DNA of 64,000 bases from Lytechinus pictus (lineage: Eukaryota). The stretch is from NCBI RefSeq assembly GCF_037042905.1, contig NC_087256.1:18724001-18788000 (forward strand), given 5' to 3'. Of this stretch, positions 3,741 through 43,289 are shown one piece after another (positions within the stretch are counted from its first letter, which is position 1; each line of letters starts with the position of its first letter). The position numbers were made by a program, and so were the translations under genes. The notes below the pieces were generated by a model. The model did not search any database. It was not told the origin of the DNA and saw only the letters and a program-made list of their open reading frames with translations.

Positions 3741-4135
3741 TGAAGATATGATAAAAAAAAATGAATTGATACGAATTTTATTGATACATCATTTTCGTCG
3801 ACAAGACGATATAAAAGTTAGTTACCAAAATTAATAAGAGTGAATAGGCTACCATAAATTTTCGTATATGTGCCTACATTTGTTTTTTTTTTCTTTTTTT
3901 TCTTGTTCATAGAGATAAAGTTCCGGACGGATCACATTCTCCTACATCATGTAGGCCAAAATATATCGAAGGGACTAAAAGATAATTAAAAGTGATAAAT
4001 TCAGAAAAACAATCATATTTCACCATGATTTTCAAGAAGAAAAAAAAAATACTCATTCATAAATAGTCCTGTTTACTTTTGGAATTGAAAATTATTTTAT
4101 CAACTTTCTATATTGAGAGAAAAATAATTCTAGCA

Positions 4136-4230
4136 ATGGCGTATCGTTTCCCTAAGCAAGAAATTGATTCGCAATGAGATGCACTCAACCCAGGTGAGGT
4201 AAATGCGTACCTGACAGGAAATTTTTCCTT
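4136..4230 (+). mobile_element. SINE fragment, same family as 1914-2198
   Basis: GCAAGAAATT...GCACTCAACCCAGGTGAGGTAAATGCGTACCTGACAGG matches the SINE body. Confidence 0.6.
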
Positions 4231-4249
4231 TGGGTTCCTTTAGGCTAAG

Positions 4250-6108: not shown

Positions 6109-6112
<4 letters not shown>
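4250..6112 (+). mobile_element. 5'-truncated LINE (CR1/L2 group) with frameshifted reverse transcriptase
   Basis: KSPGYDGI and NYRPISIL motifs upstream. ORF 4595-5323 has QFGFR, FLDLSKAFD, GVPQGPVLGPLLF, YADY (mutated YADD) and KFLGV. It continues by frameshift in 5308-5535 (YCNIVWG, LQKRAIRII) and later WNSLP, ending in an AATAAA and ATCTA-type tail. Confidence 0.9.

Positions 6113-6174
<62 letters not shown>
6113..6174. repeat. (TA)n microsatellite
   Basis: Direct reading. Confidence 0.95.
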
Positions 6175-6176
<2 letters not shown>

Positions 6177-6707
6177 CTCATGAGATAGAGACACGTATCT
6201 CACCCAACAAATTAATGCGAGCGCGAGCTTAAAATTTCTTTATATTCTGACCTGAAAGCTTGATATTCTAAGCATTTTTGGTACCAATAATTAAGATGGG
6301 TTTCTAAAAAAACAATAGATGCAAGCGCGAGCTGAAAATTTTGATATTTCGATCTGAAAAAATTTGAGTTTAATGGACGTTTTTAATAAAGAACAAGATA
6401 TATATCCGACAAAAGATTATTGCAAACTGAAAACGGGACATTCTATTCACCTATTTGATCATGAAAAGTATGGGTTTTGCTACAGAAATGATGCGAGCGC
6501 GAAGCGCGAGCTGAACATTTTTTATATTCCAATCTGAAAAGCGGACATTTTGAGCACGATTTTAGACAAAGAACAAATTCTTATTTTTTATTTTTTGCAC
6601 ATGCGGAATTATTGGGGGGGGGGGGGCAAAACGATATGTTTGCCCCCCCCCCAATATTTTCATTGATGGGGCGATCCCCCTGCCCCCCCCCCAGGATCGA
6701 CGCCTCT

Positions 6708-16877: not shown

Positions 16878-18282
16878 AAAGTTATTGATTTATAAACTTA
16901 TTAAACTTATGATAAACTTATAAGACTTAGTTTCATTATTAGTTTTAGTTTACTTTGATTAATATTTATGGATATACTTTGCTCAGTTTGTATCTGTTTA
17001 AAAGAAATAATAATAATAATCGCGGTATATTGACCCAGGGTAGTCACTTCAGGTGGGTGTTTCATAAAGCTGTTCGTAAGATAAGAGCGACTTAAAGAAC
17101 GACTGGTGATCCTTTCTTTTAGTAAATGGTATACACCATTGGCAATGGTTTAGCGCGTAAGAAAGGATCACCAGTCGTTCTTAAAGTCGCTCTTAACTTA
17201 CGAACAGCTTTATGAAACGGCCCCCTTCCGAAAACTGTTCTCCCAGCGGGCCCTGCTATTATTATTAAAAGTAAGTCCCCAAAATCCCAAATTTTTTTTT
17301 ATTTCATGGCTGTAATTTCTTTTTAAGGAGCTAGAAACTTAATTAGAATTGTATCTTTAGTAAGGCCATCGCATACCTTACGAGTGGTCCACGATCCGAT
17401 TTTGGAGCAAATCGCAATTTGCTCATTCTTCAGAAAATGTGAATGAAAAGTATTTTTTATTTGACGTTCAACTGAAAGAATACTAATATAACAATTTTGG
17501 ATGAGAAAAAAGAAAAAAGAAAGGAAAAAGAAATAAATATTTGAATTTTACTTTATTCATTTACTTTTTTTTTCTCAAAGAAAACAAACGTTAATAATAA
17601 AATATTTATGATGGCGATAATAGTCAAATTTGACTGGTTGCCAAATAAAAATAAGAACCCCCCGATGATTGTAAGCCTTTATTTGGGGGTGAAGGCCAAA
17701 TAAATTTCAAATTGTAGCCAGTCGTAGGATTTCTGACGTCATTACGACTAGATATTCAATTCGCTTTTATTCTAAAAAGGATGATAGCATAGTCACAGAC
17801 ATGCACGGAATCACAATAGCCTTATTCATGTATTTTGTACAGTCGTGGTTACTGAAAAGTTAGAGTCAGGTTCGGGGGCCTATGTTACAAGTCATGTGTT
17901 TCCTCTTTAAGGGGGAACTAAACAGAACCTGGGGAGGAACTTCTTGTTAAAGGACAAGTCCACCCCAACGAAGTGTTGCTTTGAATATAAAAATTCCAAC
18001 AAGCATAACACTGAAAATTTCATCAAAATCGGATGTAAAATAAGAAAGTTATGACATTTTAAAGTTTCGCTTAATTTCACAAACAGTTATATGCACACCC
18101 TGGTCGATATGCAAATGAGGAGACTGATGAAGTCATCCACTCACTATTTATTTTATTATATGAAATATGAAAAATTCTAATTTCATCCTCATTGTCAAGT
18201 GAAACAACAATTAATTCCTCCCTGAACATAATGGAATTAGCATTCTTTGATACTATACACTCTTAAAATAACCTCTTCAAAT

Positions 18283-18590
18283 TCTGAAAAGATTTCCTTG
18301 TCAAATATTTTCGAATAGAAAACTATTCAAAATGAATAGTTTTCTATTCAAAATGATTAGAAAACTGTTCAAAATGAAAAAGAATCGTTTCATTTTGAAT
18401 GACAAAGATAAAAAGATTTCCTTGTCAAATATTTTGAATAGAAAACTGTTCAAAATGATTAGAAAACTATTTAAAATGAAAAGAATCGTTTCATTTTGAA
18501 TGACAATAACAAAAAGATTTCCTTGTCAAATATTTTGAATAGAAGACTATTTAATGAAAATAGAGAATCGTTCCCTTTTGAATGACAAAA
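18283..18590. repeat. Left subterminal repeats of the EnSpm-like element
   Basis: Three copies of AAAAGATTTCCTTGTCAAATATTTT(C)GAATAGAA plus multiple (C)TATTCAAAATGA motifs. Confidence 0.8.
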
Positions 18591-19366: not shown

Positions 19367-19837
19367 TATCCAGTTTAATCTGTAAGATATTACATGATTT
19401 TGTCGGTGAAGTAGTTTTATTTTTATATGTATTAATATGCTCTATTCTCTTGAACAAATTTCTTGTATCTGCAACAGTGCCATCATACGATTTTCGGTCA
19501 AAATGCAACTCACAAAATGTCAATGCAACTCACAAAATGTCATGTACGATCACTGCGATGCTACTCGATGCACTGTATACGTTATGATTTATGATTGATG
19601 TACGGTAGCTTAGCCTTAGCCTACTGCATTCGACAGTCTGCATGCAGTTTGCACAATGATTAGTCTGGAATTGATGTTGTTTTATGATGTTCACCCCTGG
19701 GCCTGGCCCTGGCCCTGGTCTCGCGGCTAGCACTAGCAGTCTCAGTCATAAGACAGCAAATGGAACTCGAGTAAGTTAGGCTTGGAAGTTGGGGCCTGGG
19801 CTAGGCTAGGCCTACCTTAGGTCTAACGTTAGGCTAA

Positions 19838-20359
19838 CCCAGAGAGCTCCCGCCCGCACAGCGGGCGGGAGCCCAGAAGCTTACCGTGTATTTTACCATT
19901 GTCACCGGACTAGGGTGATTTATGGTCTAAATATTTCTCCAAATGAATTGTGAAAATGGAAAGTATACAATTACCACGATTATATGGATGAAGGTCTAAC
20001 GAGTGGCAGATTCCTGACATCTGGGCACAGTCTGGAACCTCAAAAAAACGAAAAGTTCTCTCCTTCTACCCAGTCTCGATCGGCCATTTTGTTACGATTT
20101 TTAACAAAAATGGCCGATCGAGACGGGGTAGAAGGAGAGAACTTTTCGTTTTTTTGAGGTTCCAGACTGTGCCCAGATGTCAGGAATCTGCCACTCGTTA
20201 GACCTTCATCCATATAATCGTGGTAATTGTATACTTTCTGTTTTCACAATTCATTTGGAGAAATATTTAGACCATAAATCACCCTAGTCCGGTGACAATG
20301 GTAAAATACACGGTAAGCTTCTGGGCTCCCGCCCGCTGCGCGGGCGGGAGCTCTCTGGG
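19838..20359. mobile_element. Near-perfect 522-bp fold-back piggyBac-like MITE
   Basis: CCC...GGG termini, ~257-bp arms almost identical, centre near 20097, flanked by CTAA and TTAA. Confidence 0.85.
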
Positions 20360-20884
20360 TTAACGTTAGGCCTATCTAACTAGTATTACTAGGCCTAACT
20401 TTAGGCCTACTAGGCCTAGTAAGTTATGGTTAGCAATATAGCATGTCGAGTCGTCTTGAGCAAGGCAAGGCAAAACAAGGCAGACCCATGTAGGCCTAGC
20501 TATAGGCCTAACTGTTAGATCCCGGCGGGGCCTAGATCTATCTAGTAATCTACATTACGAGTATATTCATGAAGCGTGGATTGTATAGGCCCTGAAGGCT
20601 AAGGTATTCAGCGATCTCATGCACAAAAATGTCAAGAAGCATATTTTTATTCCAAACCTCATTTCATACTAGGCCTGGGCCCTGACCCAGGCCAAGGCTA
20701 GACTAGATCAAGGCCTAGCCCTAGCCTAGCCTAGGCCCTAACTTAGTTTAGGCTTAGGCCTAACTTTAGTATTTGATATTCAATTTTTTTTCAATGAATG
20801 CCTAAGTTATGGCTTCACTGTCTTGAACTTGAAGGTAGCTATAGCCTAGGCCTAGTAGGCCTAACTTAGGCCTACTACTGATTT

Positions 20885-21977: not shown

Positions 21978-24900
21978 TTTTTATGTAGGCCTAGGCCTAT
22001 ATTATATGCATGCAAAGAGAGTCTTTGGCAAAGTGTCAAGATTGACATTGAGATAAAACTAGCCATCAGTGTCATAACTACCAGGCATGTAGCTGGGGGG
22101 GTTGGGGCAGTCACCCCCCAAAAAAAAACAAAAAAAGGAGAGAGGGAGAAAGGGGGAGAGAGAAAAAAAAATGAAAAAGTAAGAGAAGTTAGGGAAAGGG
22201 CAGATGTAGAATCACAACAAAGATTGTCTTCTTTTGCTAATGATTTCAGGAAATTTCAAAGCTTCCACGCTTAGCGCAGGAGGGGGAAACTCAAAGCCTA
22301 CCAGAAACCTGTGATTTTATTTCAATTCGTTTCAGAAATCAGAGTTTCTCAGTTGGCCTTTCTTGTAGATTTTAGTACTTTATTACTATGTGCTTTGATG
22401 AATTATCCCACATTTTAAGAGTAGCCGATTCGAAACATTTTCTAAGCATTATGGATCTTTAAGATTAGGCCTCAATATTTTTATCATAAAGGAAACCCTC
22501 TGTTGACATAGTTGTGACTGACTACGCATGTCAACACCTAAAGGCTAAGGGCACAGCCGTCTTGTAAATTCTAGAATAATATAATTAAAATAATGGAATT
22601 TCAACAATGAAAATTTCAAAACTCATTTTAGGTGACTTATTGTGGGCTTTTGAGATAGTAGGTCACATATGTAGACCACCCCCCCAAAAAAGGGCTTGAC
22701 ACACACCTGTCAGGTGGTCAGATGAGGCCAAATAAAAATAATTTCAATTTTTTTTCTCGTCCCCTCCTTCCTTTTTTTGGGGCCGCCTTAATTGCTTTGT
22801 TATTTGATATTTTTGTTCTGAAATGATATGAATAAAAATATGAGGACTTCTAGACAATGATATACCAAAAAACATTAATATGCAATTACACCTTGTTTCG
22901 ATCCTCTGTAGTGTAGTACAAGTGTTACTAAATTTGTGAAGAATGTGTTGAAGTTGACCCAATAGCATTTTTGTGTATAAAAAAAAATCAAATATCAAAT
23001 AAATAACATGGAACCCCCTCCTCATTTTCGAAAAATCCGGACGAGAAACTAGGAATTGATTTTACTTGGCCTTACCAGTAAAAGTCACTGTCAGGCAATT
23101 AGCTTAGTTTGCTGGTCTGATATGACCGATATGTATATTGTCAGGGCTAGTAAAAAAGAACAAATCCGATCGAGGGGGGAAATTAGAGACATTTGCATAT
23201 ATTTACATGTATTTCAACAAATTCTAATTGCAACAGACTTTGTATTCAGGACTTTTTTATTTTCTCAGAATATTATATAAGTGATCTGATAATGAACAAA
23301 AATAAAGCCCTGTGTGATTTCAAAAAGATGCAAGTCTACTACCTCCCCTCCCCGGAACTTTAATTCCCAAGGCCATATAACTTGTTTTATAAAGATGTTT
23401 GAAACAAGAAAATAAAAAGGCCTCCATCTTTTTGGGGGGCACCGCATATTGAAAATATAGTGCTATAAACCGTAGGTATTCAGAAATTAATTCAATAAAA
23501 AACAAAGAGCCCCTCCTATTTTTCCAAAAACCAGAAGAGAACCATTTTTTTTTTGTTTTACTTGGCCTTAAAATGTGTTTTTTTTTTTTGGGGGGGGGGG
23601 TTTGTTGAAAAATTACTGGAAATGAAATATTGTGTGCCTACAAAATCAGATCAGATATTGTCTTTTAAAGCGAGCGTGCATGATTTCGCTCAGTGGCACA
23701 TCTAAAATGGGTTAAGTCAGAGCAATTTATCGCGGCAAGTCATGTCAGAAGCCACTCCAGAGACATTTTTCAGCAGTGGCAGTACTAAGGGGGGGGGGGG
23801 AGGGGACGAATTCCCCTGGAATTTTTATTTTTGAACACTAAGCTTATAATGCCATGTAGGCCTACAAGAATTTCATATATATGTGAGACATAATTTGGTT
23901 CCAAGAGCAAATATCGATCGGGGGGGGGGGGAGGGGTACTAAACTTTTGTTTTGGTATGGGTGTGAGATTCGCAGGGCTGAAAATAGGGGCTTAAAGAAT
24001 GGAAAGGCACCAAAATAGGGGCTCAAAGAACTGATTTTTTAAAACTAATTTTTGGCCCATTTTAAAGCTTGAGAACTCGTTGCCAGTTTTATGTTTACAA
24101 GTTCCATTATTGCCCTTGCCTTATAGACAACTGTATTTTTTACCCACACCTATTGATTTTTTATGTTGTAGAAACAGCAGCAACATACAAACCCACCACT
24201 CTAATGGTTTTCTCAAAATCGAAAAAATTATGAAATTAGAGGGGATAGTTTCCATCTTATAAATGTTCTTATGTCTCCAGAGACAAATAATTAACATTCC
24301 TGTATGAGTGCTTCTTAATTCAGCTCTAGTCTATCATGTCAAATTAAATCAGATAGAAATTTAGTTTGAGCTCTATTTGAGGGGAAAAAATTTAAATAAA
24401 AAAGAAATGTGTCTCATAATCGCCCAAGAGTTAAATTTTAGAAAAATTTATACCCAAGGAGTATTAAAATGACATTTTGATGATCAAAAAGTTTGAAGTC
24501 ACCTGGTGGGTGTTTCATAAAGCTGTTCGTAAGATACGAATGACTTTACGAACGACTGGTGATCCTTTCTTGTGCTCTGTGATATCCCTATGTAATTGAA
24601 TTATGACCTAAGAACATGTTCCAGTCGTGCGTAAAGTCGTTCGTAACTTTACGAACAGCTTTATGAAACACCCACCTGATGACCACAGATAGTGTGTTTA
24701 TTTTGCTCAAAAGGACTGATTTCAATACAATTTTAGCCTCTTTAGGGGGTAAAGTGTATCATTGATGGGGGTTATTAAATTTTTGTTGCTGAAATAGGGG
24801 TGTTGTAACTTTATCGCCGTCGACTTTTTGTAAATTTGGACCCCCCCCCCCTCACAAGAAAATGCTAGCCCTCGTAGGAAAGAGATAGAAACAGATTTAT

Positions 24901-25090: not shown

Positions 25091-28000
25091 ATGGATGACT
25101 TTGTTAAAGAGAAACTAGTGATGTGGGGGCTGGAAAGATTTCTGGAAAATTTTGAAGGTAAGCTTTTGTAATCATAACTGTTCAACTGTCGCAAAATTTG
25201 ATATTGTTGCTTGAAGAATTTCTCAGACTGAGCAAGTTTAATTGAGTTTAACACTGCATTTGGTATGCAAAACAGTGTTAAATATGCACAGTAAATGCAT
25301 GCCTAAGCCTTCCGTATTTGAATGTACGCAGCACGCAAGACATTTACTGCCGTTCAATCAAAGTCCGAGAATAACGTTGGGCGTTCATGGTTAGTAACAA
25401 ATCACTTTACACACTTTTTTTATCCGTTCGAGAAATTCCTCAAGCAACAATAAAATAATATTCCATCTATAATGTGAGCCTGTCTGGCTATGGATTTGTT
25501 TGGCCATGCTTTGACCTACGGAGCTGTTTGGCTTGTAGGGGGTTAGCAAGCTTGAAGGTGTGTGATGTCAAGCTTCCAAATTTTGCACTCATTTTTACTT
25601 GGAATATTTATAATGAGCGATCAACTTTAAATTGTTGTTCAAAATAAAATGTTTTGCCGACAGACTTACCCAACTTTCTGGGCAGTATGTAACCAGAACA
25701 ATTTTGTCCCGCCTTATGTTTGTTGTTGAACCTATGACAAATGTGTACAAAATAGTTTTGAATTAAAAGTAGGAGTGGGCTTTATACAGGGGTCAAAAAC
25801 ACTTTTTTGGTAATTTAATTTTTACAACAGTGTTTTTTTTGTGGGAAATGACTTATCTCAATATAATATGGAAAAATTTTGGACTATGTGTTTACCAAAA
25901 AGGTGCGCCATGCCCTCTTATGTCAGCTCATAGCTATTGAAATTGTGGGAAGGAGCAAAAAGTTACTTAATTTCACTCATTTTCAGTGAATATTTCTGTA
26001 CCTTTGGTGTCAAATTAGATGCAAATGAAGTCAAAATACAAGATTTTGAAAGTTCTGTAAAAATCAGACATTTCGTTTTTGTGAAATGCGCCATCATAGG
26101 TTAAAATGTAGCATGAGGGTGCTTTTCATTCTTTCAAAATTTTTTTGAATTTTTTGCTTATCAAAGGATACCAGAATAAAGATAATACTAAGTTTGACAT
26201 CCTCAAGAAGTTTGAGCTTTCTATTGCAAATGGTTTATCTGTAGCGACTATTAGAGTATCCGATTAGAATCGATATGTTTCCCATCAAATTACACAGAGG
26301 AAAATTTTGGTCGGTAAAGAGCGTGCATTATTTACAGGGGAAGGGGCAAGGAGAAACTTATGGGGGAGGGGTGTCATATGATTTTCAGTTGGTCAAATAT
26401 TAAAGGGCATTTTGGGGAATTTGGGTCCTTGCATGCTTAGAACACAAAAGGGAAGATGCAATGCATTAATATGTGTGAGATAAACATAGTGTGCCTCAGG
26501 TTTTTTGCGCCATTATCACTTACGCTAATATTGCAGAAAGATTTTGCTTACATGCGCACTAGAAAGCCATGTGAAGAACTTTGAATCTTCCTAATTTTCC
26601 AAGATTTGTGTAGGTCATCAGCAAATATTATGTTTCAAACTTCAAAAGTGTTTCTTGAATTTGATACCAATTAAATTCTACCAAATTCAGCTACATTGTA
26701 TGTATTATGAAGATTCCCCAACTACTGCTCCATGAGATCGAAGCGAGAACTTCGACTCAAGAACCACTAATTTTTTTTCTTTCTAATTACACCCCTCATG
26801 AAAACCTGGTAAAAACACACATGCCCACAATGCCTGTAATCTGGATCATGAATAACACGGAATATGGTCATATGGTTTTATTTGTAACAGAACAAGAGAT
26901 TGACCAAGAAACCCTCCTTCTCCTTGATGATCAAGCTGTGAAAGCGGATTTGATAAAGCCACTTGGTCCAAGATCAAAGCTGCTCCAAAGGATAAAGGAA
27001 TTGAAGGTACTTTTATTTTGACTTTTACTCTGTAAAGGAGTATATCGGAAACACTATTCTAATGGAATATAATTGTACTTGTCCCAAGTGTGGTGAACTT
27101 ATAGACGGTGGCAGTAAAGCAATTTTATGGCATTTACAGAATCGACATGGTGTTATTAAGGGCCGTATTTTTACAGAAAGTATAGTATGTATGCAGGAAG
27201 GGTGCCAACGAACATTCTCAGGCAGAACGGAACAGTTCAAGCGCCACTTGATGAGTCATGCTTGTACTAGAGAACCACATGGCCATGTCCCACCACGTCC
27301 ACATGGTAATTTTGATAATGCTGCAGATGTTGACGCAGGCAATGATTTTGCTGAAAACATTGATGTTGACATTGACCCAACAGAAGGGGATGCTGAGATG
27401 TGGGATTATTTTGGTGAGGATGAAATTAAGGAACGGGCTGTCATGCTGGTTGCGGGTCTGCTGGCAAACAGTAGCATTGTCCATACCACAGTTAATGAAG
27501 TTGTAGAAAAGTCAGCTTCTTTAGTTAAAGACACGTGTATGTATATAAAATATAAGGTGCAAAAATTCGGTGCAGAAACTGGACTTGAAGAAAATGATGA
27601 ATTTCAAAGTCTCCTATTGGATATAGATATGGTTTCCCACCCGTTTGATAACATGGAAAGTCAATACAAGCAGAAGAAATTCTTCAAGAACAGTGCAGCT
27701 TTTATTCAGCCTGAACAAACTACAATAGGTATTGCATATTATCCATGTAATAACCGTTTAACAGGCAATGTGCAGCAGGTTATGAAGACTATCACATGCC
27801 AGTACATTCCAATTAAAAAGCTAATAACCTTATTGCTTGAAAAAACAGATCTTATGAAACTAGCTGTAAGCTATGTACCAAGCACAGATGGTATGATGCA
27901 TGATTTTCAAGATGGTTTTTTCTGCAGGCAAAGTAGGTTTTTATCTAGCACTCGTACAATCAAACTAATTCTGTATGTAGATGACTTCGAGGTTACCAAC

Positions 28001-31000
28001 CCTCTTAGTCCTAAGTCTGGGACTCACAAACTGACAGGAGTGTATTTCAAAATTGCTAGTGTACCACCTCAATACCGGTCAACTTTAGCAAACATATATT
28101 TGTTGATGCTGTTCAATTCAAGTGACGCAAAACTTTATGGATATCCTGTGATTTTGTCACAATTGCTGAAAGATCTGAAGGTGCTTGAGTCAGATGGTAT
28201 AGCCATTCATACCGACACTCTTGATGGAGTTGTAAAGGTTGGGATAGCACAAGTAGTAGGAGACAATCTAGGGATTCACTCATTGTTTGGTTTCAGCGAG
28301 GGCTTCACAGCAAACTTTCCATGCAGAACTTGCCGAATGCCACGTGCTGACATAAAGCATGCTTTACTTGAAAGAAAAGAAGTAATGCGGACACCTGAGA
28401 ATTATCAACTGGACCTTAATAGGAATAGCTTACAAGAGACTGGTATAAAATCACCATGTATCTTGAATGAATTGACACACTTTCATACTCTAGACAACAG
28501 AGCACCAGACATCATGCATGACATGCTAGAGGGAGTGTGCCCCTTGGAGGTGAAATTGGTGCTGCATGAACTTATCAGAAAACAAGCTTTTACATTAGAA
28601 ACATTAAATGCCAGGATTACGAGTTTCAATTACGGCCTACCTGATGCAAGTAACAAACCCTGCCCCTTCACTAGCAATCAGCTTCGTTTTCCTGATGGTG
28701 CTGCAGGACAGCATGCAGCACAAATGTGGTGCCTTGTCCGTCATATTGGAGTTATGCTTGCGGATCTTATTCAAGAAGATGATGAGCACTGGGAACTTAT
28801 CGTAGCTTTGAAACAATGTATGGATATCATTTTTTCATCTAAGATAAGCAAGGGACATACCTTGTTCTTGGCACAATTAATTAGAGACCACCACATGCTC
28901 TTTTTGCAACTCTTTCCTGATCGTGATCTGAAGCCGAAACACCACTTCATGAGCCACTACCCTTCAGCAATGCAGCTGCTTGGACCTCTCATTATTTATT
29001 GGGTGATGCGTTTCGAAGGAAAGCACAACTTTTCTAAACGTTTGGCACACATTGTGTGCAATTTCAGAAATATTGCCAAAACTCTAGCCTACAGAAACCA
29101 AATGCAGCTTTGCTATAACGTATTAAGCAATCAGACAATGACACAGAAATCTGTTGAAACAGGTCCTGGTTTATCTGTGATGTTAGCATCATTGGAAGGT
29201 GCTGAAATTATATCTCAGACATGTAGCATACCTTTATATGATGATATATATGTTGCACAGTGGTGCAAGGTTTATGGTACTGAGTATCGTGAAAATATGA
29301 TGGTGGCAGTTAGCAAAAATGACAATGGAGATGCCCAATTTGGAAATGTGAGAACAGTGCTTGCAGTTGGTACAACAGTTTTTCTTGTGTGCCATTTGTG
29401 GCATACATATGGATTTAAAAGACACTTCCATGCTTATGCGGTACAACCTAAAGAGCCAAAGGAAATAACTGTGGTTCAAGTTGAGAATTTGATTGACTCT
29501 AATCCCCTGCATGCTACTAAATCCTATGATGACGATGATGACTTGTATTACATAAGCACAAGATGTATGTTGTAGGTGAGTAATTCAATCGCAAAAAAGA
29601 TTGATTTATTTTGCTAAGTTACTAAAACAGGATTTTCAATCTACTGCAGGTCACAAACCATTAATTTTGAGCCAGAGCTCGATATACAATGCACATGTAG
29701 AGGGTGCACAGCACACATGCACAATGTAGATAACATTTTTTGTTTGCATGTAGAGTTTCTGACCTGCATACACATTGTGCATGTGAAGAAATCTGATTAA
29801 TTCGTTACAATTTCAACTCACAACTCACTTCCTTTATGACTGCTTGCTGTTCATAGCAATGTAACTTGACACTTTGACGGACATGCAGGATCCAAATTTT
29901 TGGTCTAAAAACTTGGATGTTAATACTGTATATAAGTTTTCAAGTTTTACATGTAATAGAAACTCTTAGTTTAAAAAAAAAAGTCGATGCTTTGACATAA
30001 AAACAAACAGACCAAAAAAAAAAACAAAGGAGTACATAGACCTTCATGTTTGAGTAGCTCAATAGCTCAGGAACTCCTGAAAGAGCTTGTAAACCAGCTA
30101 GGGAGTTTTGTAAAGATTTAGTGATTCTACCTGATCTTAGTACAACTCTTGTATGAAACTATAAGTAGTATAGTGATTAAATGCTGATTGGAACTTTTGG
30201 AATTTTGAATAAATTATCTCTGGGAATCCATTGAGCACTCTGTTTTGGGAATTGTGAAAACAAATTTAATGATTTACTGTATTAATAACCATCTGTTCTG
30301 CACTTCACTACTTGAGGGACCATCATTGATCTCTGAAGATTGCACGTTCTCTGAAGATATCCCAAGTACTAGCAACTCCTCACTGTCTATCCCAAGTGGT
30401 TCATCAACATCTATCATCAAACCACCAGAAGATATCCCAAGCACCAGCAACTCCTCAACGTCTATCCGAAGCAGTTCATCATCAACATCTAAACCACCAG
30501 AAGATATCCCAAACACCAGCAACTCGTCAGTGTCTATCCCAAGCAGTTCATCAACATCTATCATCAAACCACCCGAGGCTAAAAAGATCAAGATGGCTCA
30601 TGTAAGTTTTTAATCAACATTAAGGGAGGTCAGAGCCTTGCGACTTCTGTAAAATTGTTTTCATTCATTGTAACTTGAAAACTGATAATGTATGCTGAAT
30701 AAATGTAGACACTTTTTAAAAGGAAATTTCACAAGAAATCTAATTATAGCATCAGATTTTAGATTAAGAACTTGCTTTTCAGAAACTCACCAAAAACAGC
30801 AAGTTATTTATCCAATTTTTTTAACAAGCCTAGAAAAAATACTTTTGGGTAAAAAATGGGTAAACATCATCTAAATCGATAGTTCTTGGGTATGTTTTTT
30901 TTTTTTTTTAAGTTAAATTCCTATTTTTCAAAATATTTGTCAGTAAAGGCAAAAATCATTTTTTTAAACCAAAAAAACCCATGATTTGTAAAGCAGTTAT

Positions 31001-34000
31001 TTGACACATATTGGCTGTTTTTTAGAAAAATATGAAATTAATTTAAAAAAAAGGTATGAAAACAATCCCAGAAACTATCGATTTGGATGATGGTACCACA
31101 TTTAACGATTGTTGGCGCAAAATGAAGAAAAAAAATGTACTAGCTAGGCTCCTTGTTTGTTCCTGTTCCTATAGTATCTCTCTCATATTCTAGATGTGAA
31201 GGCCCCGGCACATACATGGATCACTTAAAGCATCCACTTATGACCTTTCTTTGTAATCACTTCTGATCTGCAGGACATACGAGCCATCTTGTCCAAACGG
31301 AGAGAGGGGGAGGAGCTTATAAAGGAGATGGAGGAAGGGTGCATCAGCTACAATTCACGAAAATTGATAGTGAACACATTGGTCTCACACCTGATAGAGA
31401 CATATACAAAGTGGTAAGCTAAAATCCTATGAGCAGAAAAAGGAAATGCTAGCGTATTTAGATGTGCTATACTATGTGGTAGTTTATTTGCTTATTTGCC
31501 TTACCAATTGACTCCAGTGATCAAATAGATGTCAAGGATTAAAAGTTTGACCACAGACACATACATACCATTTCAAAAGCAATCCCTTTCTCTTGTAGAT
31601 GACACAAAAGTTAATTATCAACTTAACTGGTGCATTGCATACCAGAAATAACCAGACACTTGGTATAAAAATTGTATACATGTAATCTTATCTAAGAAAT
31701 TTCACATAAATTTATATTTTTTTACATTTTCATGGCATAATTGAAACTTGTGTGTTGATATTTAAACACAGCTTTTGAATTGTTTATCACATTTACATAA
31801 CAAATACATGCAATGAGCTGACATTACATGTGTATTATGCAGGTGCTTGGAAATAGTTTGGTGTGATACATACACCTTGCACTGTTTGTCTGCTTTATTA
31901 AAGGATGGGAGTTTGGAATTACTAAAATCAGAAAATGGGTGGATCAAAATTTTGCTATATAAAGGATATTCTCAAAGCAGATCACCAATGAAGCAGAAGT
32001 TCATCAGACTACAATTCAAAGCAGGGAATAATTTTGCTTCCCAGATTTGATTAGAAATTTTTGGAGATGGGAAAATATTTAAAACAAATTATGTACAATC
32101 CCATGGAAAAAAAATTGTGACACAAAGTAAATTTTGTGTAGCAGCCCTGCAAAAAAGCAAAGCAAATTGCGATGCGATACTAGGTAATTTATTCCCTGCA
32201 AAGAATTGCATTTAATCTCTAATATATATAGCCTTTTAAAACAATATTCTTAAACATTCAATTTTCATTTTTCTAAAGGCCTAAAACAGAGCAAAAATTG
32301 GCAATGGCAAAATGCATTGTTACCCAGTTTCCTGCGTTGGACAATGATGATCATGATGCTTACGTAAGTTTTGAGTTCATTATGTTAGTTCATGGCTAGA
32401 TAAATTGTGTGTAACATTGTTACTTGTTAAAGATAGGATCACCCATTTACAAGCCATGTTCATCATTGACTTTAGGCTCATGATGACCAAGATAACCATT
32501 GTTTATACTTAATATCAGCTAATGCTAAATGACCCCCTGAACACGTTATCTGCAGCAGGTTATTATTTACTCAACCAGACAAAAGTGGATGAAACTTGAT
32601 ACAACTGAAAGTCTAAATGCTTAAATCATTGAAAGGTTATTGTCTCAGATTGGGCAAGCCTTTATTAAGGTAAATCTGATTGACCGTACAGTTACCCCAA
32701 AGGGTAATACAAATTCTTATGAACAGTGATCTCTACTTCTAAAATTCAATAGTTTTGTTTTACTTTTTTTACTCTTTTACTTTAAAGTTGACCTGGTTCA
32801 CTCCAGCAAGCCAAAACAAAACAAAAGATTCATCAGGTTACATTGAAATGCGGCTAAGGAACGTCAGATATCGTGATCCTGCCAGAACGCCAAAAGAAAG
32901 CAACAAGAAAGTGCAAGCAAACTTGCCTAATACAGAAGACCTGGATCTGTCGTCAGGTAAGGAAGAAATATAACAACTGAACATTACATAACCTTAGTTA
33001 ATTGGTCATGGAGATCTAATAGGGGTATTTGTGTCTGCCAGGGAAGCATACACAGAATTAGTCTCAAATAATACCCATGCATGTGTATAGTGTCTTTTAA
33101 AAAGTGGGTTTAAGCAATCATGCTGACACATTCAAGCGACATCTGAATATACAAATTAGTTGCGCTGTAACGAAAATGAGGCAATTTTTCGTATCGATCT
33201 GAATGATATTTTGGAGATCTGCGCCACAAGTTCCTTCCTTTTTTTCTGTACCCTTTTTGTTTGTACAAAATAGTGAAATCAGTCAAGAAATATTCAGGGA
33301 AGTGGTTAATTCTTGACATCTTAACAAATAAACTCCTAGTGCTTTAAGGCTTCACATGCTTCATCTATTCAGCACCATGCACATTACAGTGTATGAGCCT
33401 GGGGGTTGAGCGTGCATCATGCAGGCTGCGACGATTTTTTCTTCACTTGATTGCCTGGTCAGGCAAGCTTGGCCTTAAAACTGCTTGACCTTGCTAACAA
33501 GCCGCATAACAAAACGGTCTGTGCAAAGTTAAAAGTCAGAATATGTTTATGGTTTGTAACTATTTAAGACATGTATAATTTTTGGATGTGTGTAACTTAA
33601 CATTACGAAAATAGCCCATTTGGAGTTCCACCGCTGTTGGGGTATCAAACTGCGGTAATATACCCCAAAATACGTTTGAAAATCTCATTTCTCATTTGAA
33701 CATTTCCAAGCCCCGATAAACCCATCTTGGCCATGTAATCCCCGTTGTCTCAATTTCACCTCCACAGGCCAGTAAAGCCAAGGACGAAATGATAAACAAC
33801 AGCTGTGCTATTACGTAAGACTTCTCTGCCTGAAGAAGGAACTTCGGAATTAAATTATTGTCTTCGATATTTAATCACGTTTTCAAAGGCATATTGTATT
33901 CAGACATCCAATATTAGTCCTTTTTCAATTTCGAACGAAGAAAATCGACCTCGAAATAAGGAAAATAAGCGAATAAAAATTAGGTTATGCTTTGCATGCA

Positions 34001-37000
34001 GGGACTGCCCTTAAAGCGCTGCGCACACGATGCATTCACCGCGTGTATACACGGAACTCCATAGCAGGCTCTTAGACACGTTGCAATCCATCGTGTGTGA
34101 CCCCCTGCTGTGCTGGGCTGTCGAGTTATCTTCAGAGCGAGGTCAAGAAATAGGTGTTTTGATACTTAAATTTCTTGCTTGGGGGCAGATCGGGATTATA
34201 GTGGTTGGAGAAGAGAATTGGTGAAAACGATTTGGGGTATACCCCTTTCAAATGGAGGTATTTCGTCATGAGTGATAACATTGATGCAAGCTAACTTACG
34301 ATTTGATATTAATCATTGTTGCCCAAACCAAAAAATGATTGCCCAGGGCAATCAGGCAACCAATTGTCACAGCCTGCCCACATGTTTTATTTCTTGTGTT
34401 AATTTTTTACTGTCATCAGGTGAAATGGAACATTTGCTTGTGACTGTCATGACTTATAAATAAACTAAAAAGGCATAATGCATTAACTCCCTGAATTTAT
34501 TTGCATATTTAGATAGAGATGAGGAAGTAGATGCAAAAATAAAGTGGCTTCAGGACCACAAAGAGCCAAGGCAACAAGTTCGATCATGGATGAGGGATAC
34601 CTGTAAGGCGAGGGCAGGCTACATTAGAGACAATAAGGACAAACCTGTGCAAGAGCTTTTACTGTTGTTTCCACGTTTAATTGACACAGAAGGAATGGTA
34701 AGTTTTCAATGGTACTGACTAGTAAAGTCTTCCTGCTTTTGCAGTAATTCCTGCTTTTTTAATTTATGATTTCCAGCTTGATCTTGCACTTTTATCTAAT
34801 TTCAGCCCGTTTTGAAGGCTTTTAAAAGCCCAGATTCATTCACATTTTCAGGTTTTTCCTTCAGGCCAGCTTGCATTTCTAAGACGATGGCACAGTTCTG
34901 TAATGTGATGTGAAAAAAATAGGGGTGTCTACATAGGGTGGCAAAATATCACAGCTCTCACAGTTCACAACTTATACACTTTTTAGCTCCCTGCGTTCAA
35001 ATTTTTTGCAGAGCCATTTTTTGACCAGTCAGCTTAGTAAATTATTCAATTTTATGTATATGTAATTCTTGTAGTTTCCACTTTAATAGAGCAAATAGAA
35101 TGTACAAAACAGGTTTTCTTTATACTAATGACAAAACATAAAACTATTCGATTTTAACTTTGTCTTTATACAGGTTGACCAGGATTTCCGAATTCTTTTC
35201 CCACAATCAGCAGATAAGTTATTCCTCACATGGCCGAAATTTTGCAGACATGTCCTGAACTATGCTGAAAAGCAGGTGGATTGGAGGCTATACCTTAACT
35301 TCAAAGGTGCTGTTGAAACAGGTAAAATGGTGCTTATGTCTAACAGCTTCACTCTTCTTTCAAACCTACAGTCAGGCCATGCCATGCCCGTCACTTTGAC
35401 AGGTAACTTCCCTTTTTGACGGGCAAGTAATGAACATTTTATACAAATTCAGCCCATTTTGGACAGGCACTCTTTCAAAAATGAGGGGCAACTCCAAAAT
35501 TCTAACTAAGGCCCTGCCTACAGTAGTGAATATGCAATTTGAAATCCATTCTACATGTATGTATTATAATAGCTTGGTGAAAACCTGATAATCCAGACTA
35601 TGATTGTCCCATTTCAGTAAGTGGGATTAATGTTAATGTTAATTAATTAGAGCGATGTGAACTATATCAACATTTTTTTACAATTTGCAGTAATAGTAAT
35701 AAACTACAAATATGTCTGGAAAAGTATTTGTTTCTTTTAAATATGAATATTATTATTAATTCATTTACTTTGTCGTACGAAAACTTGCTTCCTTCATCAT
35801 ATCATTGCTGAGATGATAAAAGCCTTATATCTCAACAAAAAAGTGAAATGTTCAGGAGAGCATAAATACATTAATTGCTTTCAATACAAGATTACAGATC
35901 ATGTTCATGTAAGTTGCAAGGTTCAGTAAGTTCATTGTACATGTAGGACATAATATTTGCAAATTGAAATGCAAAAGTTTGTCAGAACAAAATCTGAATT
36001 AATTAGCAACAACAAAATCTTTTTTAAAGTCATTTTCATCAAAATTTGACATGCAGATCGATTTTTATCATCTCTACGCCAATATTGGGATCTTAAATTT
36101 ATGCTACTGACATGTACAGTGATTTTAGTATTGAAGGATGAAAATTTTTGTTAAAAATTTGCTATTTCAAGATAACTCTAATTTGACCTCTGTCAACATC
36201 ATTCTCACCCACCTAAGACTATAATATAACCAATGATATTATAGTCTCATTCACTGGTCTTGAGTCGTATTTGATAACCACCTCTTTATCTCCAATTTGA
36301 AATTGTGTGATATGAATGGAGGACAAAGCCCGTGTTTGATGCTGGGAAGGGGGTCTTAGTAAAAGGGTGGGTACAGGGATGTGTGGCCCGAATAGGGTCC
36401 TTTTTGGCCTCTCTTGTTTACCTATGGCCCCTTTTTTAAAAATTGGTGTACATATTAATTTTTGAGGAATTTTTCTTTGGTTTACCGATATATTGTCAAA
36501 AAGTACTTATTTGCATTCCAATTTACTTGGTATTAAAAAACACTGATTAGTTTTAAAAAGGCCCCTTCCAAAAGCAACAAAAGTAAATGGTTAACACATG
36601 GGTTGCAAATTTGCATCTTCTTAGGTTTACTCATCAAAGGGTGGTTGTTGGAAATTTTGGGTGTTCGGGCTGCACATCTGTACTTAACTTTAATCTCAGG
36701 TTAGATGTGATAAAATGAGCACAAATTAATCTTAGTCTGTCCTGGAGTTTACTTCTCTGCAGGTGTTTTTGCCGTTGCTATCATGTCACGTTTGCGGCGT
36801 CTGTACGCGCTTTCATATGCACTTGTTTGATTCACAACACGCTCCCATAACTGGTTGATGAGCAATTTACTCTTGCTATGCTGCGGCATAAATTGTTCTT
36901 GTACAGATGTGACTTTGATGTGAGTTTGAGAGAAAATAAACATTTGGAAGAACTATAATTTAGAAACTTACAAATGTAGTTGTATCTTGTCTCCTATGTT

Positions 37001-38987
37001 TCAGATGAACAGGAGGTAAACTTATCTCTGCAGGTGTTGCCTATGCTGTTTCCACCGGGAAAGAAGAAAGGGGCAAAAGGGAGAAGTGGTTCTTCAACGA
37101 TGGATGAAGCCCGCAAGGCATTCGTGCAGCGCAAAGAGGTGAGGAACAAATTTTATTTTTACTATTTGGCACACACTGTTTCAGACAGATCAAGCAGAAA
37201 TTAAACAAATACCCAGAGCCTGCTATTAAAAGGACAGGACTGAGATTATTTTAGTGATATTACATAAAACACACAGTGGCTCATTGCAAAGGGTTGTAGC
37301 ACCTGGGCAAAAAGTAGAAATTGCTCTCCTACAGTATATCTGGGGCACTCCTATGACTCCATGAAAGCCTAGACAAAAATATGACATTTTGTGAAAGAAA
37401 CTGCAGTAAACTCCTTTCTGGATGGAATTTTTTATAGTAAAATTTAAATAATTTGACAAGCCCGCTATAGTGCTCTATAAGTTTGAGTCAGTTAAATCAG
37501 CTATATGACACAAAAACTAAGCAATTGTGGCAGCAAGGGTATTTACACGTCTGAGACGCATAGTGTGTGTGTGTGGGTGAATTTTCGTCTTTTTTAACCC
37601 CCAAAATTTGACATTTGAAAACGTGGATCCGTCAGAAAAATCTGCAAACAGACGTGTTTATTTTGAATCTTCACAGAAAAAATAATCAGTTTTAAGGCTG
37701 GTGTCAACCTGTCAATGTTTGAAAAGGTTTTGCTCTGTAAATCAGCCTTAATTATTATTCCTAGTAAATGAGTGCGTTTGTAATCCTAATAGGAATATGA
37801 AGCTATCCATTATGAGACAATATATGACAGTGCATTTAGCGGTCAACACAGTGAAGCTACACATTATAACTAAACGCGAACTGCTCTACTTGGTTTGGAA
37901 TATTGTATGTTTGAATAGGGGTGTACATTTTTCAATAAAAATGTTGTTTTTTTTGGGGGGGGGTGTTGACATCATCTTTGGTTTGAAAATTACTCAAATT
38001 TGTGACTGAGAATGAGAATAAAAGATAGAATTAATTGTTTTGCCTGTCATATATCGTCTCATAACGCAGGCGCGGATCCAGGATTTCTGGGGGGGGGTTC
38101 AAACTGGGAAAATTTTCTGACAATAATTTGAAACCTGACAAGCAAAAAAAAAAGAAAGAAAAAGCTTATCACTCCTTTTTGAAATCTGACAAGCAAAAAA
38201 AAAAGTCTTTATTACTCCTTTTTGAAATCTTACAAGAAAAAAAAAAAGGTTATCACTCCCTTTTTTCCCCCGCTCGCCCCCCCCCCCCCCCCCCCCCCCC
38301 GTATCCGCGCCTGTCATAATGGATGGACGTACATTACAAATGATAGTACTGTTCCGTAGTGATTACTAAAAAACCTGAGAAATTAATTTTAAAAAAAATT
38401 TCTTTGAAAACTGTTCTGGAGGAAAATATGTTTCAGTGAGAATTGAGTTCAACGAATATTGGCATGTATAGCTGCTGGCTGTATTTCCCTGCATTTATCA
38501 GAACTTAGTCTGGCATTCAGTATAGCCCTCCGCTTCACAACCCTCACTACATTTGCCTGTTTTACTAAGATTGAAATGATGCACTAAATATTCCCTCCTT
38601 CATTTGTGGATGGTTCTGCTATCTCACTTGTCACCAATTTTATTTGTATTTCATATGCAGATTGGTACAAACATACCAGGCTTCTTGGACCAGAAGACTC
38701 AAACACAACCGTTTGTGTTAATTCAAGGTGAAATTGACAAACCAGAACAAGTGTTTGTTGTTGTGGAAAATAGCACCATCCCATGTACAAGTCTCCTGAA
38801 AGGAATTGATATATGCATGAAACTAGTGTATATCCTTGATATGGATTATGCTTGGCAATGTCAACATGTTTGGGACTTTCTGCAGAAGAATGTTTACAAA
38901 CTTGGGCAGGTGAAAGGTAGAGGTACCTCAGTTCCAGCAGTAACACTTCTCAAAACCTATCTAGAAAACAAGGTAAAAGAAGTTTAG
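25091..38987 (+). CDS. Transposon-encoded SAM-domain / SAMD3-like protein, 10 coding exons, 551 aa
   Basis: Manually spliced GT-AG exons 25091-25157, 26891-27006, 30317-30601, 31274-31413, 32279-32363, 32788-32956, 34513-34697, 35174-35321, 37005-37138 and 38661-38987. Phases 1,0,0,2,0,1,0,1,0 are all compatible, giving 1656 nt with no internal stop. N-terminal SAM (VKEKLVMWGLERFLENFEEQEIDQETLLLL...IKPLGPRSKLLQRI), then AKCIVTQFPAL, GYIEMRLRNVR, FPRL, QPFVLIQG and IDICMKLVYILDMDY...VWDFLQK, which I recognise as SAMD3-like. The exon 3 acceptor is an uncommon GAG. Confidence 0.85.
27062..29575 (+). CDS. Intact EnSpm/CACTA-family DDE transposase with N-terminal C2H2 zinc fingers, 837 aa
   Basis: CPKC..H..H and CMQEGCQRTF..H..H fingers. 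Catalytic-region motifs LYVDDFEVTNPL, HKLTGVYF, GDNLG, FPCRTC, DIMHDMLEG, PKHHFMSHY and WVMRFEGKH. Single uninterrupted ORF inside TIRs. Confidence 0.9.
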   Translation: MEYNCTCPKCGELIDGGSKAILWHLQNRHGVIKGRIFTESIVCMQEGCQRTFSGRTEQFKRHLMSHACTREPHGHVPPRPHGNFDNAADVDAGNDFAENIDVDIDPTEGDAEMWDYFGEDEIKERAVMLVAGLLANSSIVHTTVNEVVEKSASLVKDTCMYIKYKVQKFGAETGLEENDEFQSLLLDIDMVSHPFDNMESQYKQKKFFKNSAAFIQPEQTTIGIAYYPCNNRLTGNVQQVMKTITCQYIPIKKLITLLLEKTDLMKLAVSYVPSTDGMMHDFQDGFFCRQSRFLSSTRTIKLILYVDDFEVTNPLSPKSGTHKLTGVYFKIASVPPQYRSTLANIYLLMLFNSSDAKLYGYPVILSQLLKDLKVLESDGIAIHTDTLDGVVKVGIAQVVGDNLGIHSLFGFSEGFTANFPCRTCRMPRADIKHALLERKEVMRTPENYQLDLNRNSLQETGIKSPCILNELTHFHTLDNRAPDIMHDMLEGVCPLEVKLVLHELIRKQAFTLETLNARITSFNYGLPDASNKPCPFTSNQLRFPDGAAGQHAAQMWCLVRHIGVMLADLIQEDDEHWELIVALKQCMDIIFSSKISKGHTLFLAQLIRDHHMLFLQLFPDRDLKPKHHFMSHYPSAMQLLGPLIIYWVMRFEGKHNFSKRLAHIVCNFRNIAKTLAYRNQMQLCYNVLSNQTMTQKSVETGPGLSVMLASLEGAEIISQTCSIPLYDDIYVAQWCKVYGTEYRENMMVAVSKNDNGDAQFGNVRTVLAVGTTVFLVCHLWHTYGFKRHFHAYAVQPKEPKEITVVQVENLIDSNPLHATKSYDDDDDLYYISTRCML
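30354..30575 (+). repeat. In-frame Ser-rich tandem repeat (about 3 x 23-25 aa) in exon 3 of the SAM gene
   Basis: EDIPSTSNSS..SI.S.SSTS(II)KPP repeated three times. Confidence 0.85.
38067..38313. mobile_element. CAGG-ended MITE with 8-bp TSD in the last intron
   Basis: CAGGCGCGGATCC ... GTATCCGCGCCTG, with TSD TCATAACG/TCATAATG. Confidence 0.7.
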
Positions 38988-40745: not shown

Positions 40746-41699
40746 ATAACAGAGAGAAATGTGGAGGCAAGCACATTGTGCAAATGCCAACATTTAAAGA
40801 AAGAATGCAACCAAAAGTAACAAGTTTTGTTTACCAGCATAAGTAGACAAAACTTGTTTTCATTTGAAAATTGGGCTGGAAAGAAGCGAGTATTGGACCA
40901 TTCTCATAACTGGCAAGTTCAAAAGAAATTTTTGTTTTCTAAAAATCTCACAATATTGCTTGAAATTGTTGTACAGATGTATAGATACAGATTTTTTTTT
41001 TTCAGATTGGTCAAGTTCAGTGAATTAAGGGTGAAAATCAATCACCAATGTCAACAATTTTCTTGTGCAATAATGTTCTTGCACCCAAACCCCTACTTGT
41101 GAAGTCAAGTGGGTAAGTCATTCAAGTTGTATTTTTAAGGAGGTAGGGCAACCAAAACAAAAATTTAGCATGTTTTATGCGCTGTCTCAAAATATCACCT
41201 CTTTTTTTTATAGAAAAATGAGATATGCATCTTAAAGCAAATTATCTGAAAACCTAAAAATGACATTGATATTCATATTCAGGCCAAATCAGTGATTTTT
41301 TTTGAAAAACTCACATGATTTAAATCATGATTTAAATCGACATGATTTAAATCAAACAACCCTGGATGGGTTCTTCATGAGAAGTAGATTACAAATTTCT
41401 CAGGATGGCAATTGAAAGTTTGTATTGCTCACACCAAAGAGAAACCATAAATTCTAAATTTAAAGACACTTTTAAAAATGCAGCTGTTGAATGCCAGTAA
41501 ATCAGGACTCAAACCAGAGAAACCGTTCGATTTTGTCGCCGCCTCAGAAAAAATATCTCAAACTTTTAACATTTTAACATTTAAAAAATGTTAAAATTTT
41601 AACATTAAAATTTATCATTTTAACATTTAAAAAATGCAAAATCTGGTTTTAGCTAATCTCAAGCATGTAACTTTATACAACCTATTCCTTTGTCCTTAA

Positions 41700-42294
41700 A
41701 GGGCAAGTCCACCACAACAAAAAGATGATTTGAATAAAAAGAGAAATATCAAACCAGCATAACGCTGAAAATTTCATCAACATTGGATTTAAAATAAGAA
41801 AGTTATGACATTTTAAAGTTTCGCATAATTTCACAAAACAGTTATATGCACATCCTGGTCAGTATGCAAATGAGGGAACTGATGTGGTCATCCACTCGCT
41901 ATTTCTTTTGTATTTTTATTATATGAAATATGAAATATCGTAATTTTTTTCTATATTACAAGTTTTAAAAGGGCTTGACTCCTTCCTACATGTGGGGAAT
42001 CCACTTCTGCAACATACTGCAATTAAACAAAGAGCTCCCTTATTGACAAAACTACAAAATTTGAAAATATTCTATATTTCATATAATAAAATACAAAAGA
42101 AATAGTGAGTGGGTGACGTCATCGGTCCATGCTGACCAGGATGTGCATATAACTGTTTTGTGAAATTAAGCAAACTTTAAAATTTCATAACTTTCTTATT
42201 TCAAATCTGATTTTGATGAAATTTTCAGCGTTATGCTTGTTTAATTTTTTTTCTTTTGATTCAAATGAACTTTTTGTTGGGGTCGACTTGCCCT
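41700..42294. mobile_element. Intact Kolobok-like MITE related to the split host element
   Basis: TTAA|AGGGCAAGTCCACC ... GGTCGACTTGCCCT|TTAA with long inverted arms. Confidence 0.82.
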
Positions 42295-42764
42295 TTAAAA
42301 GGAGATGTTAACCTAGAGCTGTGAATGCTTTGTATACCAGATGTAGCTCGAGAATTGCAAACCCTATTTTTGTGGAAACAATTCTTACTATGAGAAAGCT
42401 TTACAATGGCTTAAAGGCATTGGTCAACATGGTGTTCAATTTTAAAAATCTGAGCTGCATGTTCTTACATGTATGCTATCAGGATGTCTATTGGAATATA
42501 GAAATGAACCTGAGGGGGGGGGATGCTTGAAGTTTTATCATTTACAGAAAAAACTTTTTAAAATTGGATAACTTCAACTTATCATCCCATGACTACTGTG
42601 CAGGAATTATTGTCTTACACTACATAATAAACATAATGTTCATAGATTATGTCTTGATAGTGAATATGTGACTTTCTTTTGTTTTTACTTATGTAATATA
42701 CCTTTCTATAATTTGTTATGTTTTTTATATTGTTAATGTTACCAATTCCTGAATTTGGTGTTGC

Positions 42765-42832: not shown

Positions 42833-43130
42833 TGATTCTATTCATTTTGAACAGGATTCTATTCATTCTTGAATAGAAAGACTACTCATTCTTGAATAGG
42901 AATACTATTTAACTTTGAATAGGGTATATTCCAATTTAACAAGAGGATGAAACTGATTCTATTCATTTTTAATAGGATTCTATTCATTCTTGAATAGGAA
43001 AACTATTTAACTTTGAATAGAATACATATTCATTTATTTGAATAGATTTTCCTCTTCATTTTGAAGAGAACCTTGTAAGTGTCCCTCGGAAGAGGTTTTC
43101 TATTCAAATCTGAATAGATTCTATTAAAAA
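42833..43130. repeat. Right subterminal repeats of the EnSpm-like element
   Basis: Multiple ATTCTATTCATT(C/T)TTGAATAG(G) units. Confidence 0.8.
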
Positions 43131-43289
43131 ATGAAGAGGTTTTTTTTAGAGTGTATGGTTCTGTCAAGTTGGTCCTTATTGTCAAATCTGTACAAAATGA
43201 AATATTGTATAATTGAAACAATAAAAAAACACAATAAAAAGTGAGTGAGGGACATCATCGTCTGTCTTACCCTGATAGCAGACACGGTC

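Follow-up and report, generated by a model that had tools for sequence, protein, structure and literature searches.

In the Drosophila P element, splicing of the third intron decides whether active transposase is made. Transposase dosage controlled by splicing is well worked out in the maize element En/Spm, in which a short mRNA drops the transposase open reading frame (ORF) and a long mRNA keeps it together with the accessory exons (summarised in PMC1636069). Transcripts of SmTRC1, a CACTA element of Schistosoma mansoni, are alternatively spliced, the short form without the transposase domain being more abundant; one clone had two tandem ORFs, and the accessory proteins have no detectable relatives in other animals (PMC1636069). 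The same logic may operate in an intact element of the sea urchin Lytechinus pictus, located in a stretch of 64,000 nucleotides (contig NC_087256.1, positions 18,724,001 to 18,788,000 of the forward strand; hereafter the window, to whose first base coordinates refer), in which a transposase ORF lies inside an intron of a gene for a SAM (sterile alpha motif) domain protein. The splice-switch logic is already known from En/Spm and SmTRC1, and its SAM-gene variant in animals appears to be new. As judged from sequence comparison, the nesting and the two-donor design are real, conserved features of this new animal variant of the En/Spm scheme.

A transposase ORF within the SAM gene

The sequence-only reading had placed the transposase inside an intron of the SAM gene, and this is borne out by a one-gene model and by the same nesting in nine related loci; its coordinates for the donor, the stops, the transposase ATG and the GTGAGT after the transposase stop all proved right when read directly from the sequence. 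The model has ten exons (A to J, Table 1) with canonical splice sites, consistent phases throughout, and a 551-aa product without internal stop. Exon A is conserved in L002 (73% over 26 aa) and in L005, and an acceptor precedes it both here and in L002, which implies that there is probably an untranslated leader exon further upstream. Exon B, preceded by the acceptor ...taacag, matches Pfam SAM_1 on its own (E=1.2e-4), and no Pfam match was found for single downstream exons. These downstream exons were found as blocks conserved with Holothuria (L005) and Lineus (L006), colinear on the 3' side of the transposase. The acceptor of exon C (30316/17) has an unfavourable G at -3; the exon keeps phase, and its lysine-rich end resembles the end of the matching exon of Apostichopus japonicus.

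From residue 1 to about residue 545, the 551-aa product aligns with SAM-starting RefSeq and GenBank proteins of Amphiura, Anneissia, A. japonicus and grass carp, its identity to the A. japonicus homologue being 36% over residues 1-545 (E=9e-103). Another homologue, of 522 aa and comprising SAM and C-terminus, is encoded on a Logan contig of 1927 nt, which cannot hold introns and so represents a spliced sequence. Because homologues that start with SAM align end to end and one of them is spliced, the SAM exons and the downstream exons belong to one gene, and the transposase ORF therefore sits in its second coding intron.

The transposase ORF is unbroken from ATG 27062 to TAG 29573-75. Residues invariant across 21 aligned homologues are all present in the window and include D307, D401, C421-x2-C424 and H628-x3-H632; E652 is nearly invariant. 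The residues D, D, CxxC, HxxxH and E are the signature of the EnSpm/Mirage/Chapaev/Transib/Plavaka clade (PMC12730594), and the window transposase carries this signature of what is there defined as the CMCT clade. It has no Pfam match itself; PF02992 (Transposase_21) was matched in seven of the 21 homologues (best E=1.9e-5) and DUF4218 in two, and the two of these matches with known bit scores fall below the gathering score. Its atlas neighbours are Plavaka and Transposase_21, with structural TM of 0.67-0.69 to Transposase_21 clusters. Full-length homologues occur in sea cucumbers, Lytechinus pictus, the nemertean Lineus, cichlids and cyprinids.

SAM exon 2 followed by the transposase ORF recurs in all nine other loci with nesting (L001, L002, L005, L006, L007, L009, L010, L012 and L013, from taxa that include sea urchin, brittle star, sea cucumbers, a nemertean and fish), the layout including donor, short spacer, ATG and downstream exons; in a tenth locus, carp L011, the matching intron holds just decayed transposase remnants. 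The related elements are 33-57% identical in transposase, the surrounding non-coding DNA is not alignable, and blastn of L009, L005, L010 and L012 gave no match to the DNA of the window. The donor is 24-105 nt from the ATG in L001, L002, L006, L007, L012 and, counted up to the first aligned codon, L009; the distance is 238 nt in L013 and 1.9 kb in L010. L005 has no clear donor after SAM exon 2, and its read-through stop is 22 nt from the ATG. Six loci (the window, L001, L005, L006, L007 and L012) have the SAM read-through stop 12-40 nt before the ATG, and in L002 the SAM stop and the transposase ATG overlap as TGATG. No accessory exons were found in the 3.2 kb on the 3' side of the L001 transposase. 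The contigs L003, L004 and L008 are colinear with genomic sequence and hence uninformative on splicing.

Candidate fusions of the SAM domain to the transposase were considered separately. Splicing out a mini-intron from 27007 to 27037 would join the two in frame, but its 31 nt are too short for an intron. A conserved fusion is ruled out by the offsets of the SAM and transposase frames, which are 0, 1 and 2 among the relatives. The exception is the L. pictus paralogue L009 (L009:3142-5901), in which the transposase frame runs on from the SAM exon through the donor without an ATG of its own, and intron retention would give a SAM-transposase fusion protein. At 27013-27022 of the window, the last bases of the SAM read-through are TTT TGA C, and the +1 frame, that of the transposase, is already open from 27005. 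Such an arrangement resembles known +1 frameshift sites, a slippery codon followed by a stop, and slippage would fuse SAM to transposase; it is probably a coincidence, as frame offsets vary in relatives. In Holothuria leucospilota, the gene model P0056 (1216 aa) runs as a single protein from the SAM exons through most of the transposase to the accessory C-terminus, which is probably a prediction artefact; the frames are open across both junctions in that copy.

Donors before and after the transposase

Read-through of the exon B donor gives a SAM-only ORF of 65 aa including exon A (MDDF...KELK followed by VLLF), and the transposase ATG lies 40 nt past its stop and 55 nt past the donor. The two donors that flank the transposase differ in strength: the proximal one scores 4.4 and the distal one 11.0, and the other donors of these genes average 8.2. 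A donor as good as the distal one lies within 9 nt of a given point at only 0.2% of element positions (p=0.002). The best donor 0-8 nt past the transposase stop gives p=0.013-0.058 in L005, L006, L009 and L013, and across the nine other loci, with the window excluded, donors at this place are enriched (Fisher combination, P=0.0055). Conservation of the post-stop donor in related elements, which the sequence-only reading had proposed as a check, thus held in part: such donors are enriched, and one is used by an annotated isoform of L009, but they are not universal, being lacking in L001, L007 and L012 (3/9) and weak in L002 and L010.

The proximal donor is weak across loci, reading GTACTT, GTACAT or GTAATG in seven of nine. 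Its +5 base is G in two of nine cases, against 20 of the 23 remaining donors in these genes (Fisher p=0.001), and its scores differ likewise (Mann-Whitney p=0.009). This weakness of the donor that precedes the transposase is, on these comparisons, conserved, which is a new result here.

Annotation of the paralogue L009 (LOC129263337) includes three RefSeq isoforms, two of which, X1 and X2, were reproduced exactly. Isoform X1 joins 3381 to 6384 and X2 joins 5902 to 6384, with a shared acceptor and with donors that lie before the transposase and 1 nt past its stop at 5899-5901. Both predicted donor types are therefore annotated as used, with one common acceptor, in a divergent paralogue. The A. 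japonicus locus L012 is arranged differently: its transposase ORF takes up the intron except for 50 nt ahead of it and 54 nt between its stop and the next acceptor, and it has no poly(A) signal of its own. Because of this short gap and the lack of a poly(A) signal, its transposase mRNA must run into the next exon, and because the acceptor is so near, it needs no second donor.

It is reasonably likely that the region is the core of an autonomous CACTA/EnSpm-like (CMCT-clade) DNA transposon, most likely with one main transcription unit whose products are set by the choice of donor. Layout, conservation, donor strengths and the annotation of the paralogue suggest that both donors are used in the window copy, and that donor choice probably decides which protein is made from it. 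Use of the weak donor at 27006/7 would remove the transposase ORF within intron 2 and yield the mRNA for the 551-aa SAM protein. If the weak donor were skipped, the transposase ORF would be kept, and the strong donor at 29575/6 would join it to the same downstream exons; in the retaining mRNA, the 65-aa SAM-only ORF would come first and the transposase ORF second, followed by a long 3' portion made of the spliced accessory exons. The relative amounts of accessory protein and transposase would be fixed by this choice, as happens with tnpA and tnpD in maize En/Spm. Ribosomes might reach the transposase ATG by reinitiation, through an alternative 5' exon, or at an internal start site. Reinitiation is a conjecture, as are the limitation of the long mRNA by nonsense-mediated decay and the dominant-negative SAM-only peptide, all three proposed in the sequence-only reading.

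Several points weigh against this account. With a strong context at the SAM ATG and three more ATGs ahead of that of the transposase, leaky scanning is unlikely and translation of the second ORF would be inefficient. The post-stop donor is unremarkable in L001, L002, L007, L010 and L012, including the three loci that lack it. Donors were scored with a generic matrix, and the statistics are post hoc and treat related loci as independent. The L009 transposase is just 34% identical to that of the window, and its isoforms are computed RefSeq models. Finally, the ATTAAA and AATAAA of the window intron (30176/30208) could end a transposase mRNA ahead of exon C.

The last point bears on an unlikely alternative, in which the transposase is a separate nested gene that starts within intron 1 or exon B and ends at a poly(A) site of its own ahead of exon C, with GTGAGT rarely or never used in the window copy. 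Public annotations do give the transposase a gene of its own in A. japonicus and Holothuria, the contigs L003 and L004 (from two runs) start at one identical position, 462 nt upstream of the ATG in a related element, and the absence of the post-stop donor from three of nine relatives agrees with such a gene. However, the common start of the two contigs may be an assembly break, and the 55 nt from exon B donor to ATG, like the 24-105 nt in six relatives, leave no room there for a promoter. A separate gene also sits poorly with the A. japonicus element, which lacks a poly(A) signal in the 54 nt from stop to acceptor, with isoform X2 of the paralogue, and with the enrichment of post-stop donors.

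The translation problem would be removed if the exact tnpD scheme of En/Spm were followed, in which a leader exon is spliced to 27037/38, both SAM exons are skipped, the transposase ATG becomes the first AUG, and splicing continues from the distal donor. Entry through this acceptor had been part of the sequence-only reading, and here that reading was not upheld: an acceptor is present there with an unexceptional score (p=0.20), and across the related loci there is no significant enrichment of acceptors ahead of the ATG (Fisher P=0.067), their scores being at background. No such acceptor is used among the annotated isoforms examined. The leader exon implied by the acceptor before exon A would suit this scheme, as would the pyrimidine-rich acceptors 5-33 nt before the ATG in L001, L002, L010 and L012. 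Exon skipping does occur in the region, since RefSeq isoform X3 of A. japonicus (L012:4182-4196 and 8066) joins SAM exon 1 to exon 3 with a shift of frame, omitting SAM exon 2 and the transposase. On balance the tnpD scheme appears quite improbable for the window element, and a choice between the two donors is preferred.

The element and its class

The sequence from 18258 to 43153 is a single intact DNA transposon of 24.9 kb, whose inverted ends start CACTCT... and are flanked by TA, with repeats in the subterminal regions (Table 1). Its terminal inverted repeats are imperfect, 24 of 30 bases agreeing between the left end and the reverse complement of the right end (CACTCT...AGAGTG). Termini consisting of TA followed by CACTCT(T)AAAA also bound elements of about 10 kb that contain the homologous genes of Lineus (L006) and A. 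japonicus (L012). The motif TGAATAGRA has 14 matches in the window, where about two are expected, and 12 of them lie within 300 nt of the two element ends.

Table 1. Coordinates of the transposon, its transposase ORF and its SAM accessory gene in the window
Feature	Position	Strand	Evidence or score
Left end: TA flank (18256-57) and terminal inverted repeat from 18258, starting CACTCTTAAAATAACCTCTTCA	18256..18281	+	match to right end
Left subterminal repeat array, TGAATAGRA / TYCTATTCA motifs in both orientations	18300..18570	.	motif count
Exon A: ATG 25091 and first half of SAM domain; ends in phase 1 at G/GTAAGC	25091..25157	+
Exon B (SAM exon 2): second half of SAM domain; entered in phase 1, ends in phase 0	26891..27006	+	SAM_1
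Proximal donor GTACTT (AAG/GTACTT at 27006/27007; no G at +5) and read-through stop TGA (27019-21)	27007..27021	+
Intact transposase ORF, 837 aa: two N-terminal C2H2 fingers, then D...D...CxxC...HxxxH...E core	27062..29575	+	ORF, 21-homologue alignment
Distal donor GTGAGT directly after transposase TAG	29576..29581	+	score 10.9-11.0
ATTAAA (30176) and AATAAA (30208), possible poly(A) signals in the intron, ~100 nt before the exon C acceptor	30176..30213	+
Exon C: Ser/Thr-rich linker and lysine-rich end, phase 0 to 0	30317..30601	+
Exon D	31274-31413	+
Exon E	32279-32363	+
Exon F	32788-32956	+
Exon G	34513-34697	+
Exon H	35174-35321	+
Exon I	37005-37138	+
Exon J, ends in stop	38661-38987	+
Right subterminal repeat array, right terminal inverted repeat (...AGAGTG, ends 43153) and TA flank (43154-55)	42836..43155	.

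The flanks are TA/TA in the window element, L006 and L012, and, as read from filled sites, may be a target site duplication; the bases beyond TA differ in the window (ACTATA / TATGGT). The target duplication of EnSpm is 3 bp, that of the wider clade is 2-5 bp, and ESTA uses TA (PMC12730594). The element of the window has the 5'-CA(C)...(G)TG-3' termini with terminal inverted repeats of the CMCT clade and the subterminal arrays of CACTA/EnSpm proper. Instead of the 3-bp target site duplication of CACTA/EnSpm proper, it has 2-bp flanks that fit the range of the clade and resemble the TA of ESTA.

At 24.9 kb the element has grown by internal insertions in comparison with its relatives of 10-11 kb. 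Host silencing of such elements is usual, and a swollen copy of this kind might be silent, the GT after the transposase stop being there by chance and no functional switch existing. This is very improbable, for both ORFs are intact, all splice sites and phases have been kept, and the distal donor is a full consensus site, with the p=0.002 given above, that recurs in distant relatives.

Other repeats were observed within and near the element. Inside the element, on the 5' side of exon A, a near-perfect palindrome at 19835-20362 has arms of 256 nt that are 98% complementary and separated by 16 nt; it probably arose by nested insertion of a foldback or miniature inverted-repeat transposable element (MITE). 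A MITE-like repeat with inverted ends has copies at 41696-42298, 17984-18175 and 51094-51202, of which one falls within the element, close to the right end, and another directly outside the left end. Two small inverted-repeat elements (24498-24683 and 17049-17226) have a common terminal sequence of 31-35 nt, and one of them is 400 nt on the 5' side of exon A. Beyond the element, the window contains an intronless ORF for a rhodopsin-type G-protein-coupled receptor (8371-9942; 7tm_1, E=2e-30) and a reverse-transcriptase fragment (4595-5323; RVT_1, E=7e-25).

The accessory protein and known systems

The accessory protein is best described, on fold comparison, as a SAM-domain, SAMD3-like protein: it has the N-terminal SAM domain, and the C-terminal architecture of SAMD3 is assigned through the model of a 36%-identical homologue. 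The AlphaFold model of this A. japonicus homologue (P0234; model md29ad0793be8) has a pLDDT of 82, and in a fold search it matched SAMD3 of mouse (E=3.7e-14) and human (E=1.5e-13) along its full length, the next match being at 0.015, but with low TM-scores (0.33). By atlas features, the score to a SAMD3-like cluster is 0.96. Sequence searches, including one with a profile, did not reach SAMD3, probably a word-index effect in the case of the profile. When 23 accessory homologues were compared with Pfam (E<=0.1), SAM and six weak single-member matches were returned but no plant transposon family, and fold and sequence searches of the PDB with the accessory protein matched the SAM domain alone; homology to plant TnpA was found in neither. 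Literature searches yielded no paper tying SAM/SAMD3 or sterile alpha motif to CACTA-type transposons, and the SAM-gene transposon lineage appears to be undescribed in searchable papers.

Vertebrate SAMD3 may, if the modelled fold match holds, derive by domestication from a transposon accessory gene. This would give the uncharacterised vertebrate SAMD3 a likely origin and a first functional hint, as the partner of a transposase that possibly binds subterminal repeats. The cyprinid gene si:dkey-286j15.1 (L011:3001-16823) is an accessory-gene homologue, 94% identical between two carp species and 66% to zebrafish, and is possibly a tamed copy. Among other homologues, those of the octocorals Dendronephthya and Paramuricea (P0270, P0271 and P0273) are 51-59% identical to the A. 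japonicus protein, above the sea-urchin, brittle-star, feather-star and Holothuria homologues at 31-40% (alignment A3); horizontal transfer is a possible cause of this closeness.

The donors, the SAM-only peptide and the tamed copies could be parts of an ancient self-limiting circuit, a speculative and rather doubtful reading. A weak donor before and a strong donor after the transposase would characterise a widespread animal transposon lineage, in which each transposase mRNA would first encode a free SAM domain that disturbs the oligomerisation of the accessory protein, nonsense-mediated mRNA decay would lower the amount of this mRNA, and SAMD3 and si:dkey-286j15.1 would be tamed copies. For annotation it matters that, among the gene models called "uncharacterized" or "SAMD3-like" in fishes and invertebrates, many belong to transposons. 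The architecture itself is common to echinoderms, a nemertean and fishes, and the accessory gene is also found in octocorals.

The parallel with maize En/Spm that the sequence-only reading had drawn holds: the transposase ORF is within an intron of the accessory gene and on the same strand, both elements have CAC...GTG ends and subterminal repeats, and matches among the homologues of the window transposase suggest a distant relationship to Transposase_21. The two differ in that the host intron of En/Spm follows an untranslated leader, whereas two coding exons precede it here, so that the retaining mRNA would open with a SAM-only ORF. They differ further in the accessory protein, which is SAMD3-like and matches no plant transposon family, in the 2-bp TA flanks as opposed to 3 bp for EnSpm (PMC12730594), and in the animal host. 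The P element resembles the proposed system in that one regulated intron would govern the production of transposase; however, its transposase superfamily is unrelated, and its retained intron truncates one protein, whereas here the intron contains the complete transposase ORF and is flanked by exons for a different protein. SmTRC1 is likewise an animal CACTA-type element, and its transcripts are alternatively spliced, as is proposed here. In contrast to its accessory proteins, the accessory gene of the L. pictus element has a SAM domain and is conserved across echinoderms, a nemertean, octocorals and fishes.

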